From Calcarisporiella thermophila CBS 279.70 (lineage: Eukaryota; Fungi; Calcarisporiellomycota): a stretch of 64,000 nt of DNA. A program made the translations under genes and the position numbers. The DNA is taken from NCBI RefSeq assembly GCF_041956535.1, contig NW_027192191.1:1440610-1504609 (forward strand). The letters are read 5' to 3'. Position 1 is the stretch's first letter. The number at the start of each line of letters is the position of its first letter. Below are positions 4,801 to 21,052 of this stretch, in pieces. The notes beneath the pieces were generated by a model. That model saw only the letters and a list, made by a program, of their open reading frames with translations. It had not been told where the DNA came from and did no database searches.

Positions 4801-7800
4801 TGATGCCAACATCTGTTTGCTTCGACCAGCGCAGATCCGACTGGGGAATAAGGATGTGGCCCATCGAGAGCATGCCAAGACCGCCCAGCTCTTTGGGCGA
4901 GTAGAACACGACCGGAGGGAAACGCGACGGCATCTTCGAGTTGAGCCCGATCTTGATACGGGTCTGAATCTTGTTTTCACACTTGACGAGCAGGTCGAGG
5001 AGTTCCCGCGTGTGTACCACAGCCTCACGGAAGTAGGTCATAAGGCCGATGAGCGCATTGTTCCACTTGGACGCAACCTTGGTAAAGGTCGTGGAGCCGG
5101 ACGACATGAGAATCTGCCGAATGCGATTGTGGAACCGCTGCATCGACTCTTCGTCAACGCGGAGGAATGCTTGCGCGGTGCGCTCCTTAGTCTGCTCGTT
5201 GATCAGGGACCAGACACTATCACGCAGCGTGAACTGCTGGTTGAGTGTACGGATCTTTGGCAGAATGCGCACTTCGAATCCGGCCATGGAAAAGAGCAAG
5301 TTTGGATTATCTTTGCTATATACGCTCACAAAGCTTTCCTCCCACTCGATGGTAGTGAGGGACCGCGGGAGGCGGTTCTTGATCTCCCAGAAGGTTGCTC
5401 TGCCCAAGTTCACATCGCGCTTGAATAACCGCATGCGACAGTCTCGCGGCCAACAACGCTTGTTCGGATAGCCGACGATATTCTCGAAGTTGGGGTCGGG
5501 ATTCTCAGTAAGGAAGCGTTGGATAAGGTCCCGAGCCTCATCAGCATTGAAGCGGAAGAAGATGTATATCTTGTCGATGTAGCGCATGTAGAGTCGGATT
5601 GGGTGACCGACTTCCGTGACCACATTGCGATACTGCAAGAAGTCGTTGGGCATGTTGGGAGGACCGGCCATTTCACTTGCGCGCTTCAGACCAAGCACAA
5701 GCAGGTCGAGCACTAGACCGTAATATTGCACGATAAAGCTCGCGAATTGCAACCCGCGGATCAATCCGTAGGCATTGGTGTGGTTGCAGTCTTTGTAGGT
5801 GAGAACTACGTTGTTTTTCGCGGTCATGTAGTCGGCGATGTTGTGGTCGACGATCAATCGCAAAAGGCGATTGAGCAGCGTCAGGTCAATCTTTTCGTAG
5901 AGGTGGCTGAACGTGCTCTGCAGCATGACATTGCACTGATCCTCGGAAATTTCCCACACGTCTGTGAGGTTGTTGATTCCTTGGCACCACTTATACACGA
6001 GCAATGGCGGTGGCTCCGAATCGCTGGGTTTAATCCATGCGGGCCAAAGGTGGCGCTTGTCGGCTTCATACCACAGGTATTGATCGAGGTATGCGTCCGT
6101 GATTTTTTCCAGAGGCTCGATGTCGTAGACCGGAATAAGATGGCTGTACAGGTCCATAAATTCGATGCCGACCTCCTTGAAGGCGCGACTCGTTAAGAGG
6201 AGACGCTTAATTCGTGACAAACACTCGTGTGGACTGTCGTAGGCCTGTTCGATCAAGCCCAGCTCTTCACGCTGACTTTGGTTGAGACGCCCCTTGACGC
6301 TATACGCTTCACGCAGTCTCTCCAAGGCCAGGATCAACAGCTTCGTGTCATGCTTGTAGTTGAGGGGAGGGAACTGGATTGGAGAGAACTTTCGGCTCTC
6401 GAGCCAGTGCACGGTGGTGGTGTAAATAGCCACCGCCTCCTCTGTGGTGATGTAGGGACCGTCCTTGAGGTAGTTGTGCTGGCGTTCCTGTTCCGCCTTG
6501 AGCCACAAACGAGTCAGTCGTCCCAAATTCTTCTTCGCGACCGTCTTATCCACGGTGGCGCCGCGACGAATACGCTCCCGATTGTAGTGGGCAACGCTGG
6601 TCCACCAGTCCGCCTTTGACTTGACGTAGCGCAGGATCAAATTTTCAATTGGGGCCGGCATTCCGGGCACTCTCCACGGGATATTGGCCTTCCAGCATCG
6701 CCATGCTTCCGACAAGTGCTGCAGAATAGTCTTGCTCTTGTTCTGCTTGACTCCGGGCGGCATCATGTCCAAGATGTCGTGCATCACGGCGGCACGCAAC
6801 TCTAGATCGTAGTGGGACTCCACACGTTGCTTGGTGACGGTCTTCGCAATCCCCTTAGAATTACGGCCCTCGAAGTGCCGAGCAAGCAGGTTGCCAAGCC
6901 ATCGCTCAAGCAATGGCACAATACCTCGCATGAAGAAAAGCCAAACACGCCAGCCAGGGGCCCAGAACCCAACACCAGGGCCTTTGCCGACGGGGCCGGT
7001 ATTGAAGCGGTAGTAGATCAAATGCTTCAAATCTTTGGTCATGCGAATTTGTTTCATCAGCTTGTACTTGTACCGGTACATCCCAGTCAGCTGACCCACG
7101 TGAGCAAAGATGTATTGTAGACCGTCCGCCAGCTGGAACGCGTCCACATTTCCCAAACGATACTGTACATGCGAGTCCACAATCAACTTGGTGAGACGCA
7201 AGATTTCACGGCACAGATGCATACTGTTTCCGAATCGCGACTTCTTACGCTCTTTTGTCGTCAGTGTTTTGACCGGTTTCAAGTTGAAGTTGTAGTCGAG
7301 ATGAAGGTAGTTGAGGTTCTTGCGGTGAATCAGCAAATTAAGCATATTGTATCCCTGCCGACACACCTGTAGACCGGCCTCAACCCAATCTAACTGGGTG
7401 GTTTGGAAGAATTTTGTCGCTTTAAGTTGGCGGAAAAGATATTTTTTGTTGAGTGCGCGCGGCGGCCTGTGCTTAAGCGCGTTGTGTACGTAATTTTTGA
7501 GTAACTACATCACAATAAGAGGGCTGTCAGTGAGCAGGACTCTTGCAGAATATATTTTTCTATCAAATGTAAATTACCTTTTGGTAGGAGACTCGCACTT
7601 TTACCGGTTGTCCCGGAGGACAATGTTCCAAGTACCAGTTTTTCACCAGCGGTACATCTTGTGCACGGCGGGTGCGGCCGCTACGCTTGTTGAATGGATG
7701 AGGGGCCCAGTAGATTGCAATTGCATTGGCGGTGTTTTCGGTTGAAAGGGGAGTCTCCTCCAGGAAAGGAGCTACCTCCTCGGGCAATTTGAACTCCTCG

Positions 7801-17093: not shown

Positions 17094-18955
17094 ATGTTGC
17101 CGACGGAAGTATACAACGCCTGCGTCTATGTTCCCCTTGCTCTATTCTTTGCATTGGGATGCTATACCGGCCTGAGGTTCCGTGAGGAGAATAAAAAGCT
17201 CGAGGATTTCCTTGGAGCCGTGCGTTCTCAGTCAGCCCTCACCCTGGGAATCAACTTTTTTGCCGCATGTAACTAACAGCTGTTGTTTTTGCAAATGATT
17301 TGCTCCGCTTTTGCTTATCGCTTGTTTTGTTTTTTCTTGCTCATGTTCATTTTATAGCCGTTGGAACATGGATTCTCACCACACTACCAGATGTCGCCAC
17401 CATTGCAGGACTCCAGGGGCTTATCGTCTATGTTATCGCTTGTGTCGCGCCTATCCTCTTGCTCTCCGTTCTTGGTCCCATCATTCGCCGCAAGAACCCC
17501 GATGGCTTCACGCTTAACCAATTCATTTACAAGCGATTCGGGCGGGTCGAGCACCTTTTTGTCAGTATCATCACGATTATTTACATGGCGGCCTTGTTAA
17601 TCGGAGAGCTTAGCGCAGCATATCAAGTGTTCGACATGCTGACCGGGATTAATCCGTTGCCCGTGGTGATAGTTGTAGTGATTCTTACCTCAATTTATAT
17701 TGGTAATTCACCATTTTCCGATGGTCGTATGTCTCAGGACTAACAAGCCATCGTATCCATAGCGGTGGGCGGTTTCCGTGCCTCTTTGATGACAGACTCG
17801 TTCCAAGGCTGGATCATCCTGGCTTTGGTTATCATCGGGGCGATCACGGCGGGGACCAGTGTCAAGGTCACCCACGAAAACATCGTCGCAAACCCATGGG
17901 TCACCCAACAAACGAAGATAGGGTGGGAACTGCTCTATATTCTGCCAGCCGCCGTGACAGGAGCCAACCTCTTCCACCAGGTAACCCGGCTATTGACCTC
18001 TGGTTGACCGAGTTTCTCTCTAACCGGATCTTGCTCTCCCAAGGGCTTCTGGCAACGCACCTTTGCATCGCGCACCGATCGCGATCTCCTCTATGCCGTC
18101 GTTATTGGGGTTACTCTGATGCTCCCCGTCCTCTTCCTCGTTGGATTTACCGGCATCCTTGCTGCTTGGGCCGGGGTCTTCCCTGGGCCTGATCCAGAGA
18201 ACCCCGTTCCCGGCTACCTCACCTTCTTTGCCTTGTTCAAGCTGCTACCGGACTGGGTCGTCGCGATGATTGTGGTGCTCGCTGCAAGTCTGATGTGCTG
18301 CTCCGTGGACACCCTACAGTCAGCCCTTATTTCCACGCTGTCGAGCGACCTCTTTTCCAACCGTGTGCCGCTGCTGGGAGTGCGGGTGATCTGTGTCGTG
18401 ATCAACGTCCCCATCGTCATTCTGGCCCTCAAGAACGTGGACCTGCTACAAGTGTTCCTTGTGGCTGATCTGCTTGCCTGCGCCACCATCCCTCCCGTGA
18501 TGCTGGGGCTGAGCGACAGACTCTTCTTCCTCAACGGAGAGGATGCCCTCATCGGCGGCCTAGGCGGTCTCTTCAGCGTGTTTATCTTCGGATGGGCGTA
18601 TCTTGGTGACGCTCTCAGTGGAATCAGGCTTTTGATTCTACCCAACGGCCTCTATGCCGATAACGAAGAGGTCTTGGGGGCTTTCCTTGCTGCTCCCGTG
18701 GGCGCCATTGTCTTTTGCTTTATCAGCTTTGGCGTAAGGCAGGCGGTTCGGGTGCTGTGGTCGCGTGTTCAGGGCAAACCTTACGAGTTCCCGAAAAATC
18801 CCGCACACCTGAGCATGACTCTCCCACGGTCCGACGTCGGTGCGGATCCATTGTCGACGCATGAGGGCCACTATGGGGCGTGTGCCGACGAGGAGCGAGC
18901 AATGAATTCAAAACTGGCCGCCGAGGAGGGGAAAAAGGACGTCCTTCCCAACTAA
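17094..18955 (+). CDS. DUR31: Sodium:solute symporter (SSF/SLC5) of the DUR31/NCU01977-like group, probable thiamine or thiamine-precursor transporter
   Basis: Multi-TM protein with SSF motifs (F…KRFG, GGFRASLMTDSFQG, FHQGFWQRTFA, SVDTLQSA). Three introns. An adjacent TPP aptamer supports the thiamine link. Confidence 0.85.
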
Positions 18956-19225
18956 TATCCGTGTGCTTCATAATATCTTTTTCGCCGTAAGTATTTAATT
19001 TCTCTTCGCCTCACCCCCTTCTCTCCTCTATATACTATTCCCCTATTTTTTTATTATATATATATACACATATCTTAATTTATGAAGTCGGTTCACTTCC
19101 CCCTTATCCCTCTATAGATTTAGATTTTTAGATTTTATTTATTCGCTTATTTATATATACATATATACATGGTGGAGGGGGGTTTTACTTTGGTTGTGGG
19201 GCTGGAATAAAATGGATGGGGTGGG

Positions 19226-19320
19226 ATGAACCTCCTCCATTTTCTTTTCCAATCCCATTTTGCTCTCTCCATTATGGAGAGGGAAGGGGAGGGGAGGAAT
19301 GGAGAATGGGGGAGGTTTGT
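19226..19320 (+). other. Long imperfect RNA hairpin immediately 5' of the aptamer
   Basis: ATGAACCTCCTCCATTTTCT pairs with GGAGAATGGGGGAGGTTTGT, and inner CTCTCTCCA-TTA-TGGAGAGGG. Deviations from Watson-Crick within these stems are G-U wobbles on the + strand. Confidence 0.7.
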
Positions 19321-19343
19321 TCGTATTTCATTTTTTTTTATTT

Positions 19344-19456
19344 TGAAAAATGGGCTACGGGTGGTTGATCTGCTCCATGTGAAGCAGCTCAGCCTGAGAT
19401 ATTACCGTCTGAACTTGACCATGGTTAATACCTGCGGAAGGAATGCCTATTTTTCA
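19344..19456 (+). ncRNA. TPP (thiamine pyrophosphate, THI-box) riboswitch aptamer
   Basis: P1 UGAAAAAUGGGC/GCCUAUUUUUCA (12 bp); P2 ACGG/CCGU; P3 GGUUGA…CUGCU/AGCAG…UCAGCC; invariant UGAGA J3/2; core UGAACUUGA-CCAUGGUUAAUACCUGCGGAAGGA with P4, P5, L5 UAAU and GCG J5/4. Matches the fungal TPP consensus. Confidence 0.95.
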
Positions 19457-20066
19457 TTCTACGGTTATTTTTCCCTTTTCACCCCCTTTGCCTTGCTCTG
19501 CTGGTTTGGCTCGGTGATGGTTCCACGTGTGCTTGAGACCGTTCCCATAGCGATTGGGGCGTAAGTAGAAACAAGGTTGCAGGAGAGGGGTGGGACGAAC
19601 CAGGAGGGAAGGCGGGGAGGGAAAGAAATGGGGAGATATCATATTAGGTTAGGTTGTGTGCTTGTGCTTTATCACAGGCCACCCTGAACCTAATCTAGTT
19701 TCCTATGCGCCTCAGGGAGGAGGAGCAAATGAGAAGGGATCAATCCAAATTAAAGTCGATAGCACAAAAGTGGTGAATGCGAAAAATTTTCAACAGAGTG
19801 CCACGAGACACGTAGCAGGGCTAGTGACGATAGTAACAAAAGGGATGGGGGGGGGGGGGCACAGCTGTAGTAGGAGGACTGGTCGCGGTCAAGGAAGTGG
19901 GGGTAGCAGTAGAGGTAAACGTGTATTAACAAAAGCACACACAAATAAGAAGGAACGGAATGGAATATACAAATAGATACAGTATTAGACAATATTCGCA
20001 TTTCTACATCACATACACAGACCGCCATCCATTAAATAATGACCTTGCTGATCACAGATCAGCAGG

Positions 20067-21052
20067 CTATGCGTAGAGGCTATGCCTTTCCACCCTTTGT
20101 CTCTTCCACCCGGTCCCCACTGAGACGCCGTCCCACGCGCCGTCCCACGCGCCATCCCATTCTCCGGCCCCTGCGCTGCTGGGTGCGGACGTCTCCCGCC
20201 CGAGCACCCGCTCCTTCAGCATCCCCAGCTCCGCCTGCATTCCCCTGACCATCTCGACCAGCCCGCGGTTCTCGCGGTGCAGAGACTCGATGGCCAGGCG
20301 CAGTGAATCCATCTCCCGGGCCTTTTGCTCCAGATCCTTGATGTATCTATCCTTGCGCTGCCGGAAGGCGCGCTGGGCGGCGCGATTCTGGGCGGCCCGG
20401 CGGGCATTGGCGGGCTTCTTCGATGGGTGTTGCGCAGACTGTTCAGGCGTCTGCGGCGAATCAAGGAGCTTGTTGGGGGTGGAGGGGGAGGGCGTGGTTG
20501 GCGAGGGCAATGGATCTGCTGTAGGCGGGGTGTAATCTAGAGTCATGTGCCAGAAGGGGGAGGAAGAAGGAGAGGGAGAGCGGTCAATAAATGAATGTGT
20601 CAAAGAGAGAACAGGTTCAAATAAAGAAACGTTTACAAAGAGACAAAAGAGGAGGAGAAAGCAGAAAAGGAATGGATCAACTATGACCAAGACTCACCAA
20701 GAGATATTCTCGGCTCAAATAGTGAGGACCACGGCGCTTCTCCGTATGAAAACTGGCCTTGAGGTGCGGGGGGTTGGCCCTCCAGGATTCCGTCGAAAGA
20801 AGCGCTGACCGGCGTTGGCAACGGGGACTGCCCCATATACATGTCTGGGAGGTGCATTGGTGTGAGCGGGGTCGCCAACGCCGACGACCAAGGCTGATTT
20901 GAGGACCATAGCGGGCAAGGGGAGCTGGAGCTGGAGCTGGAGCTGGGGGTGGCCGTGGTGGTGTGATTAGGATTAGAACTATTGTTCATCCTGAGAAGCT
21001 GCTTCGAAGCTTCGCTGTCTCCTGACGATAGAACTGATATTTGGAGAGTCAT
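20067..21052 (-). CDS. bZIP transcription factor (AP-1/Yap-like basic region)
   Basis: RRAAQNRAAQRAFRQRKDRYIKDLEQK followed by a leucine zipper. Exons 21052-20698 and 20536-20067. Confidence 0.9.
20126..20159. repeat. 12-bp tandem repeat x2.8 encoding WDGA repeats in the bZIP C-terminus
   Basis: CGCCGTCCCACG CGCCGTCCCACG CGCCATCCCA. Confidence 0.85.

Follow-up and report, generated by a model that had tools for sequence, protein, structure and literature searches.

A candidate 3′-UTR TPP riboswitch with a U1-like strand on a DUR31-type transporter gene of the early-diverging fungus Calcarisporiella thermophila

The early-diverging fungus Calcarisporiella thermophila carries a TPP aptamer past the stop codon of a DUR31-type gene that probably encodes a thiamine transporter. 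We propose, with a probability of roughly one half, that this aptamer belongs to a 3′-UTR TPP riboswitch that masks a stop-proximal 5′ splice site in the manner of plant THIC. The analysis covered a window of 64,000 nucleotides of fungal DNA, whose features are collected in Table 1, together with homologous loci in related fungi. At another place in this assembly, an exon of a thiamine gene matches a C. thermophila protein with 100% identity. Donor masking had been suggested in an earlier note on the same window, and that interpretation is partly supported by the results described here.

The identification of the aptamer is supported by the covariance model and by the ligand-contact motifs. 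At the Rfam gathering threshold no match was returned in the window; the aptamer appeared when the search was run in E-value mode, as a full-length match to RF00059 (model positions 1 to 105 of 105) scoring below the gathering score of 54.3 bits. The UGAGA motif, the UAAU of L5, the GCG, and the pairing of P1 through P5 are all present, with one bulge in P5. In the alignment, one change in P4 is compensated, and J4/5 is also altered. Two TPP aptamers were found genome-wide, and both are at thiamine genes; the second is convincing at 62.2 bits and lies 160 nt past the stop codon of NMT1/THI5, and a search of THI4 for an aptamer found none. These features bear on the possibility that the aptamer is conserved or decaying with no control by thiamine, the 3′-UTR introns being spliced constitutively. 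We regard this as improbable: the P5 bulge, the J4/5 and P4 changes, and the score of 48.8 bits are in its favor, as is the precedent of the 3′-UTR TPP aptamers on diatom THIC, which are conserved and show no thiamine response (PMC9544697), but the ligand-contact motifs are all kept, one of the P4 changes is compensatory, and neither of the aptamers found in the genome lies outside a thiamine gene.

The host gene was modeled by searching one exon at a time. In a tree from which the DUR3 paralogs were left out, its last exon clusters with the DUR31/NCU01977 family, and this exon shows 58% identity to a Jimgerdemannia protein and 42% identity to a Sordaria member of the family. It is the sole SSF match found in the C. 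thermophila genome. Homologs of this family bear TPP aptamers, and Candida DUR31 has been shown to carry thiamine (PMC5997356); judged by sequence, the C. thermophila symporter is probably a thiamine transporter. Its coding introns are approximately 60 to 90 nt in length, and intron 1 is short and contains no aptamer. The aptamer starts 392 nt beyond the stop codon. Since the bZIP gene downstream is convergent, the aptamer region is the 3′ flank of the symporter gene, and the alternative that the aptamer forms the 5′ leader of a downstream plus-strand gene was ruled out by the same arrangement.

Table 1. Features of the symporter locus and its 3′ flank, in window coordinates
Feature	Position	Strand	Basis or remark
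Sodium:solute symporter gene, DUR31/NCU01977 family	17094..18955	+	Pfam SSF, homology, tree
Putative exons of the DUR31-family gene	17094-17268, 17358-17702, 17763-17980, 18044-18955	+	
Alternative register just upstream of the donor	18978..18985 with 19434-19441	+	8 bp, -7.0 kcal/mol
Anti-aptamer strand over candidate donor A (GTAAGT at 18987)	18985..18995	+	32 nt past stop
Pyrimidine/purine zipper, ~19008-19045 with 19285-19319	19008..19319	+	Predicted; joins donor and aptamer in the duplex fold
Candidate acceptor TAG (last base 19117) after a branch-like A (19095) and a tract that is 86% pyrimidine	19095..19117	+	Putative; 131-nt intron
Hairpin, ~60 bp, containing AAUAAA	19204-19345	+	Predicted; rival of the zipper
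AATAAA in the interval between donor A and aptamer	19206..19211	+	p 0.044; predicted mostly paired in both folds
TPP aptamer	19347..19460	+	Rfam RF00059, 48.8 bits, E 3.1e-8
CUGAGA; GCG; L5	19394-19399; 19434-19436; 19425-19430	+	
P4; P5	19414-19417/19437-19440; 19420-19424/19431-19434	+	U19422 bulged in P5
Aptamer strand partnering donor A	19427..19437	+	Similar to the U1 5′ end in this genome
Candidate donor B, second GTAAGT	19561..19566	+	10 nt after TAG at 19550; U1 duplex -8.0
CTAAT branch point with its A at 19693; acceptor CAG at 19715	19690..19715	+	Predicted
bZIP gene, convergent	20067..20549	-	PF00170, E 9.5e-8

The complementarity between donor A and the aptamer that the earlier note described was reproduced, both in its coordinates and by RNAduplex (-8.9 kcal/mol). 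Ten of 11 positions are paired, one of them as G-U, in a layout of five pairs, an A-C mismatch, and five pairs, with 432 nt between the strands. The aptamer strand falls in the RF00059 match and comprises the 3′ half of L5, the 3′ side of P5, J5/4, and the first base of P4, consistent with its assignment to L5/P5/J5-4; as also reported, it contains the GCG, which together with L5 docking is among the characterized motifs of the TPP aptamer, the GCG serving pyrophosphate binding (PMC5882874). The whole GUAAGU, said to be covered, is spanned yet incompletely paired, as the mismatch falls on donor position +4. The proposed extension of the upstream U-run onto AAGGA does gain about 2.8 kcal/mol, for a total of -11.7, but it is not beyond chance, given that 8 of 112 GTAAGT contexts equal donor A when the U-run is included. 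The alternative register upstream of the donor is approximately 3 kcal/mol weaker in context. Against this genome's U1, donor A scores -7.7, stronger than the three coding-intron donors. Because P5, L5 docking, and the binding of pyrophosphate all require the aptamer strand, the duplex and the bound fold exclude each other by topology, as had been claimed, and their energies are within a few kcal/mol.

The significance of the duplex is tempered by the resemblance of the aptamer strand to U1. The strand aligns with the U1 5′ end in the same register as U1, a likeness that the earlier note does not mention, so that 5 of the 10 pairs would arise with any GUAAGU; the +7 and +8 pairs are also favored by U1, and the independent positions are only -2, -1, and +9. 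The CC at donor positions -2/-1 is off the exon consensus and complementary to GG in the aptamer, and G19437, found in 1 of 10 fungal aptamers (this one), provides an additional G-C pair. Donor A pairs with this aptamer at -8.9 versus -3.8 to -7.1 for nine other fungal aptamers, partly via G19437. The 11-nt duplex ranks first among 21 GTAAGT sites in the window and first among 112 in 264 kb (about 1 to 2%). Random flanks around GTAAGT gave p values of 0.004 to 0.006 for 11-nt bounds that were picked post hoc, and in a 16-nt frame 2 of the 112 sites equal donor A. Genome-wide, 148 contexts show 10-of-11 pairing. An equally strong duplex is expected anywhere in the 392-nt interval between stop codon and aptamer with p 0.36, or 0.21 when only duplexes over a GU-purine are counted. 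Within that interval, the best partner for the aptamer strand is donor A, the single consensus donor there, and the duplex is modestly above chance only because of this location. The donor A complementarity is thus a modest signal, about 1 to 3%. As a control, positions 17964-17985, which hold the intron-3 donor (17981) and its exon flank 1.4 kb from the aptamer strand, paired with a longer version of that strand better than donor A did (-15.4 versus -11.4 kcal/mol); this pairing is probably generic.

Such mimicry could be incidental, with the aptamer regulating the gene via another step: masking of a branch point or acceptor in or beside the aptamer (19387, 19392, and 19440), 3′-end processing, or control of donor B. 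AGs in P3 and P4 are preceded, at 19 to 22 nt, by branch-like motifs, a spacing also present at coding intron 3, which is consistent with acceptor masking. The coincidence of the best complement in the interval with its only consensus donor, and the fit of the nonconsensus CC to the aptamer GG, argue for a role of the donor A duplex instead, and we consider incidental mimicry unlikely, if far from negligible.

The linker between the two strands has more structure than usual (z -3.3). Across 36 choices of RNA boundaries, the duplex was predicted with a probability anywhere from 0 to 0.87, highest for an RNA ending right after the aptamer; a single-fold probability of 0.85 was discounted as evidence after this boundary scan. 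In constrained folds, RNAs that start at 18900-18975 and end by 19560 had the duplex fold 2 to 7 kcal/mol below the aptamer fold; other boundaries put it 0.2 to 8 kcal/mol above. The predicted bound fold leaves donor A 0.22 to 0.82 unpaired and not reliably exposed, and the earlier suggestion that TPP binding frees the donor finds no firm support in these folds. Overall, the modeled fold energies would allow a switch but are no proof of one.

Under the plant-THIC-like model, the L5/P5/J5-4 strand would pair with the stop-proximal donor in the U1 register when TPP is absent, aided by the linker zipper, and U1 would be blocked. The RNA would then remain unspliced and be cleaved within the retained intron, yielding a stable mRNA. 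When TPP is present, the P4/P5 arm would close, donor A would be free, and splicing would lead to a longer 3′ end. The longer RNA, with a second intron (19561-19715), a junction far past the stop codon, and possible overlap with the bZIP transcript, would be degraded; splicing to an acceptor within the aptamer combined with the intron 19561-19715 would place a junction 150 to 200 nt past the stop codon. Mago and UPF3 are encoded in the C. thermophila genome. The weak links of this model are the processing site, because the AAUAAA at 19206 is predicted to be paired in both folds, and the choice of acceptor. The putative 131-nt intron ending at 19117 is similar to introns predicted in Mucorales and would keep the AAUAAA in the RNA. 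The other candidate acceptors at 19387, 19392, and 19440 are inside the aptamer, and the one at 19715 has a canonical branch point. A predicted hairpin at 19644-19699 hides the CTAAT branch point of this distal acceptor.

The same layout admits a different use of the duplex, in which it toggles between A and B as the donor joined to their common acceptor at 19715, such that masking of A favors B and the output is inverted or affects only how long the 3′ UTR is. In its favor, the aptamer lies between donors A and B, which are of equal strength, and a single canonical branch point and acceptor follow downstream. However, splicing from B only at low TPP would leave a junction 605 nt beyond the stop codon and should cut expression when the transporter is needed, and TPP switches validated in eukaryotes are of the OFF type (PMC3597705); a toggle is therefore very improbable.

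To place the locus in context, TPP aptamers at the 3′ side of thiamine genes were compared. They were found on DUR31 of Calcarisporiella and Jimgerdemannia and on NMT1 of Calcarisporiella, Backusella, Rhizomucor, and the chytrid Rhizoclosmatium, where the aptamer lies 150 nt (Backusella), 143 nt (Rhizomucor), and 43 nt (Rhizoclosmatium) past the NMT1 stop codon. In five of these six loci, a donor-like GT occurs at -3 to +32 relative to the stop codon, four of them strong and that of Jimgerdemannia weak, which supports a real 3′-UTR intron. Three of the five stop-proximal donors are GTAAGT, a motif with a background of about 0.2 per kb per strand in the C. thermophila genome. The comparative evidence for 3′ placement is firmer than the donor A duplex itself.

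The order of U1-like site, AAUAAA, and aptamer is common to Calcarisporiella DUR31, Calcarisporiella NMT1, and Jimgerdemannia DUR31. Jimgerdemannia flammicorona DUR31 carries tandem TPP aptamers past the apparent stop codon (63.0 and 42.6 bits; L004:5213-5344 and 5631-5724). The 708-aa model in public records is spliced through both aptamers and probably ends in a false C terminus. The best partner for the first aptamer strand is a CAG/GU site 128 nt past the stop codon (-11.4 to -15.5; p 0.04 to 0.09), which forms a U1 duplex of -8.0 and is followed by the AAUAAA. By its sequence, this U1-like site appears to be an analogous element in another register and not covariation. The earlier note had named loss of the pairing in relatives, along with a failure of compensatory mutations to restore regulation, as counting against donor masking. 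The first of these is partly borne out: same-register pairing is absent at the stop-proximal donor of Jimgerdemannia, and the complementary U1-like site is present in its place. Pairing at the stop-proximal donors was weak in Jimgerdemannia (-1.6), Rhizomucor (-3.1), and Calcarisporiella NMT1 (-1.4) and partial in Backusella (-6.4). Calcarisporiella NMT1 has a pairing of -8.9 adjacent to the donor on its upstream side, beside a GTAGGT. The covariation check that had been suggested found none for the duplex among orthologs, Jimgerdemannia being the sole ortholog with a 3′ aptamer. An apparent A-U, G-U, U-A series over Calcarisporiella, Backusella, and Rhizomucor was rejected, as the donor sides are unalignable and the Rhizomucor duplex is weak.

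Several of these loci are also consistent with a role of the aptamer at a step other than donor A. The NMT1 genes of Rhizomucor (L051:3148-3249) and Backusella (L013:3234-3351) show the order stop codon, donor, approximately 120 to 145 nt, AG, aptamer, and AAUAAA, with the acceptor-like AG right before the aptamer and the AAUAAA right after it. The 3′ aptamer of the chytrid NMT1 has no evident donor, and the Jimgerdemannia AAUAAA lies in a hairpin whose opposite arm also complements the aptamer strand. Short Logan contigs of the Rhizomucor NMT1 locus are unspliced. In Rhizoclosmatium (L009:3608-3700), an AAUAAA directly follows P1, as in diatoms. In Calcarisporiella NMT1/THI5 (L001:1338-1613; C1, 567 kb), the GTAAGT donor overlaps the stop codon, the AAUAAA is in a small hairpin right before the 3′ aptamer, and most homologs are longer than the encoded protein of 309 aa.

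Other placements were also encountered. The DUR31 orthologs of Geosiphon and Ambispora have the aptamer in intron 1, which is the Neurospora crassa layout. No aptamer was found near the transporter genes of Dimargaris, Coemansia, and Cladochytrium or near NMT1 of Neoconidiobolus or Rhizophlyctis. A metagenome scan turned up four loci of fungal type; no 3′ aptamer was seen in any of them, and three had little 3′ DNA.

Masking of the 5′ splice site by the P4-P5 strand is the published mechanism of N. crassa NMT1 and plant THIC (PMC3597705), as the earlier note had stated for the ligand-free switches. In the plant THIC 3′-UTR switch, the donor is hidden without TPP and a short, stable mRNA results, whereas TPP gives a longer, unstable mRNA (PMC10226581, PMC3597705). 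The C. thermophila locus resembles plant THIC in having the aptamer past the stop codon, a P4-P5 strand that complements an upstream 3′-UTR donor, and a candidate processing signal between them; it differs in that it is a fungal transporter gene with a 430-nt span, a structured linker, several candidate acceptors, and a second putative donor downstream. In N. crassa NMT1 (Type I), the same P4-P5 strand hides a donor without TPP, but there the intron is in the 5′ UTR, the donor adjoins the aptamer, and the switch acts via uORFs. N. crassa NCU01977 and Candida DUR31 (Type II; PMC3597705, PMC5997356) share the transporter family and a long-range pairing (approximately 530 nt there); there, however, the aptamer sits in an intron of the coding region, and P1 pairs with an element near, not on, the donor and promotes splicing. 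This Type II layout, in which a long intron of the coding region holds the aptamer and P1 pairs with alpha, is absent here, where the aptamer lies past the stop codon. Diatom and prasinophyte aptamers on THIC and SSSP (PMC9544697, PMC4260697) likewise include 3′-UTR aptamers on an SSF thiamine transporter, but without splicing evidence, and Phaeodactylum tricornutum THIC showed no regulation (PMC9544697).

The fungal TPP riboswitch types I to IV are all 5′-UTR or intronic, and the 3′-UTR fungal case discussed is an unvalidated eIF5B aptamer in Postia; a Mucor NMT1 aptamer is tabulated at the 3′ end of its gene model yet labeled Type III (PMC5882874). A 2024 survey gives the NMT1 aptamers of Rhizomucor pusillus and many Mucorales as 5′ UTR. 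The post-stop aptamer at the Rhizomucor NMT1 locus matches the R. pusillus aptamer of the survey in length and GC content, the two properties compared, and the 5′ UTR label seems mistaken for R. pusillus NMT1 at least. A literature search, thin on subscription journals, returned no paper on 3′ riboswitches of Calcarisporiella, chytrids, or Mucor.

We tentatively suggest, at slightly less than even odds, that early-diverging fungi (Calcarisporiella, Endogonales, Mucorales, and at least one chytrid) share a class of 3′-UTR TPP riboswitch on DUR31 and NMT1 that is tied to an intron starting at or just after the stop codon and converges on plant THIC. The expression platform would here be the 430-nt U1-mimicking duplex, with a tandem version in Jimgerdemannia, and the class would fall outside the four published fungal types and be partly mislabeled as 5′ UTR. 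If so, 3′-UTR donor masking would be a fifth fungal TPP riboswitch type, in which the same aptamer arrives at the plant solution in fungi, and orthologs of a single transporter gene would bear the switch at different ends, in intron 1 in Glomeromycota and in the 3′ UTR here; the aptamer chemistry and the masking principle are already known. Calcarisporiella, Rhizomucor, and Backusella are culturable, and direct tests are possible. Several chytrid NMT1/THI5 proteins in our set (P0123-P0137 and P0207) are publicly named glycylpeptide N-tetradecanoyltransferase, a confusion of gene symbols.
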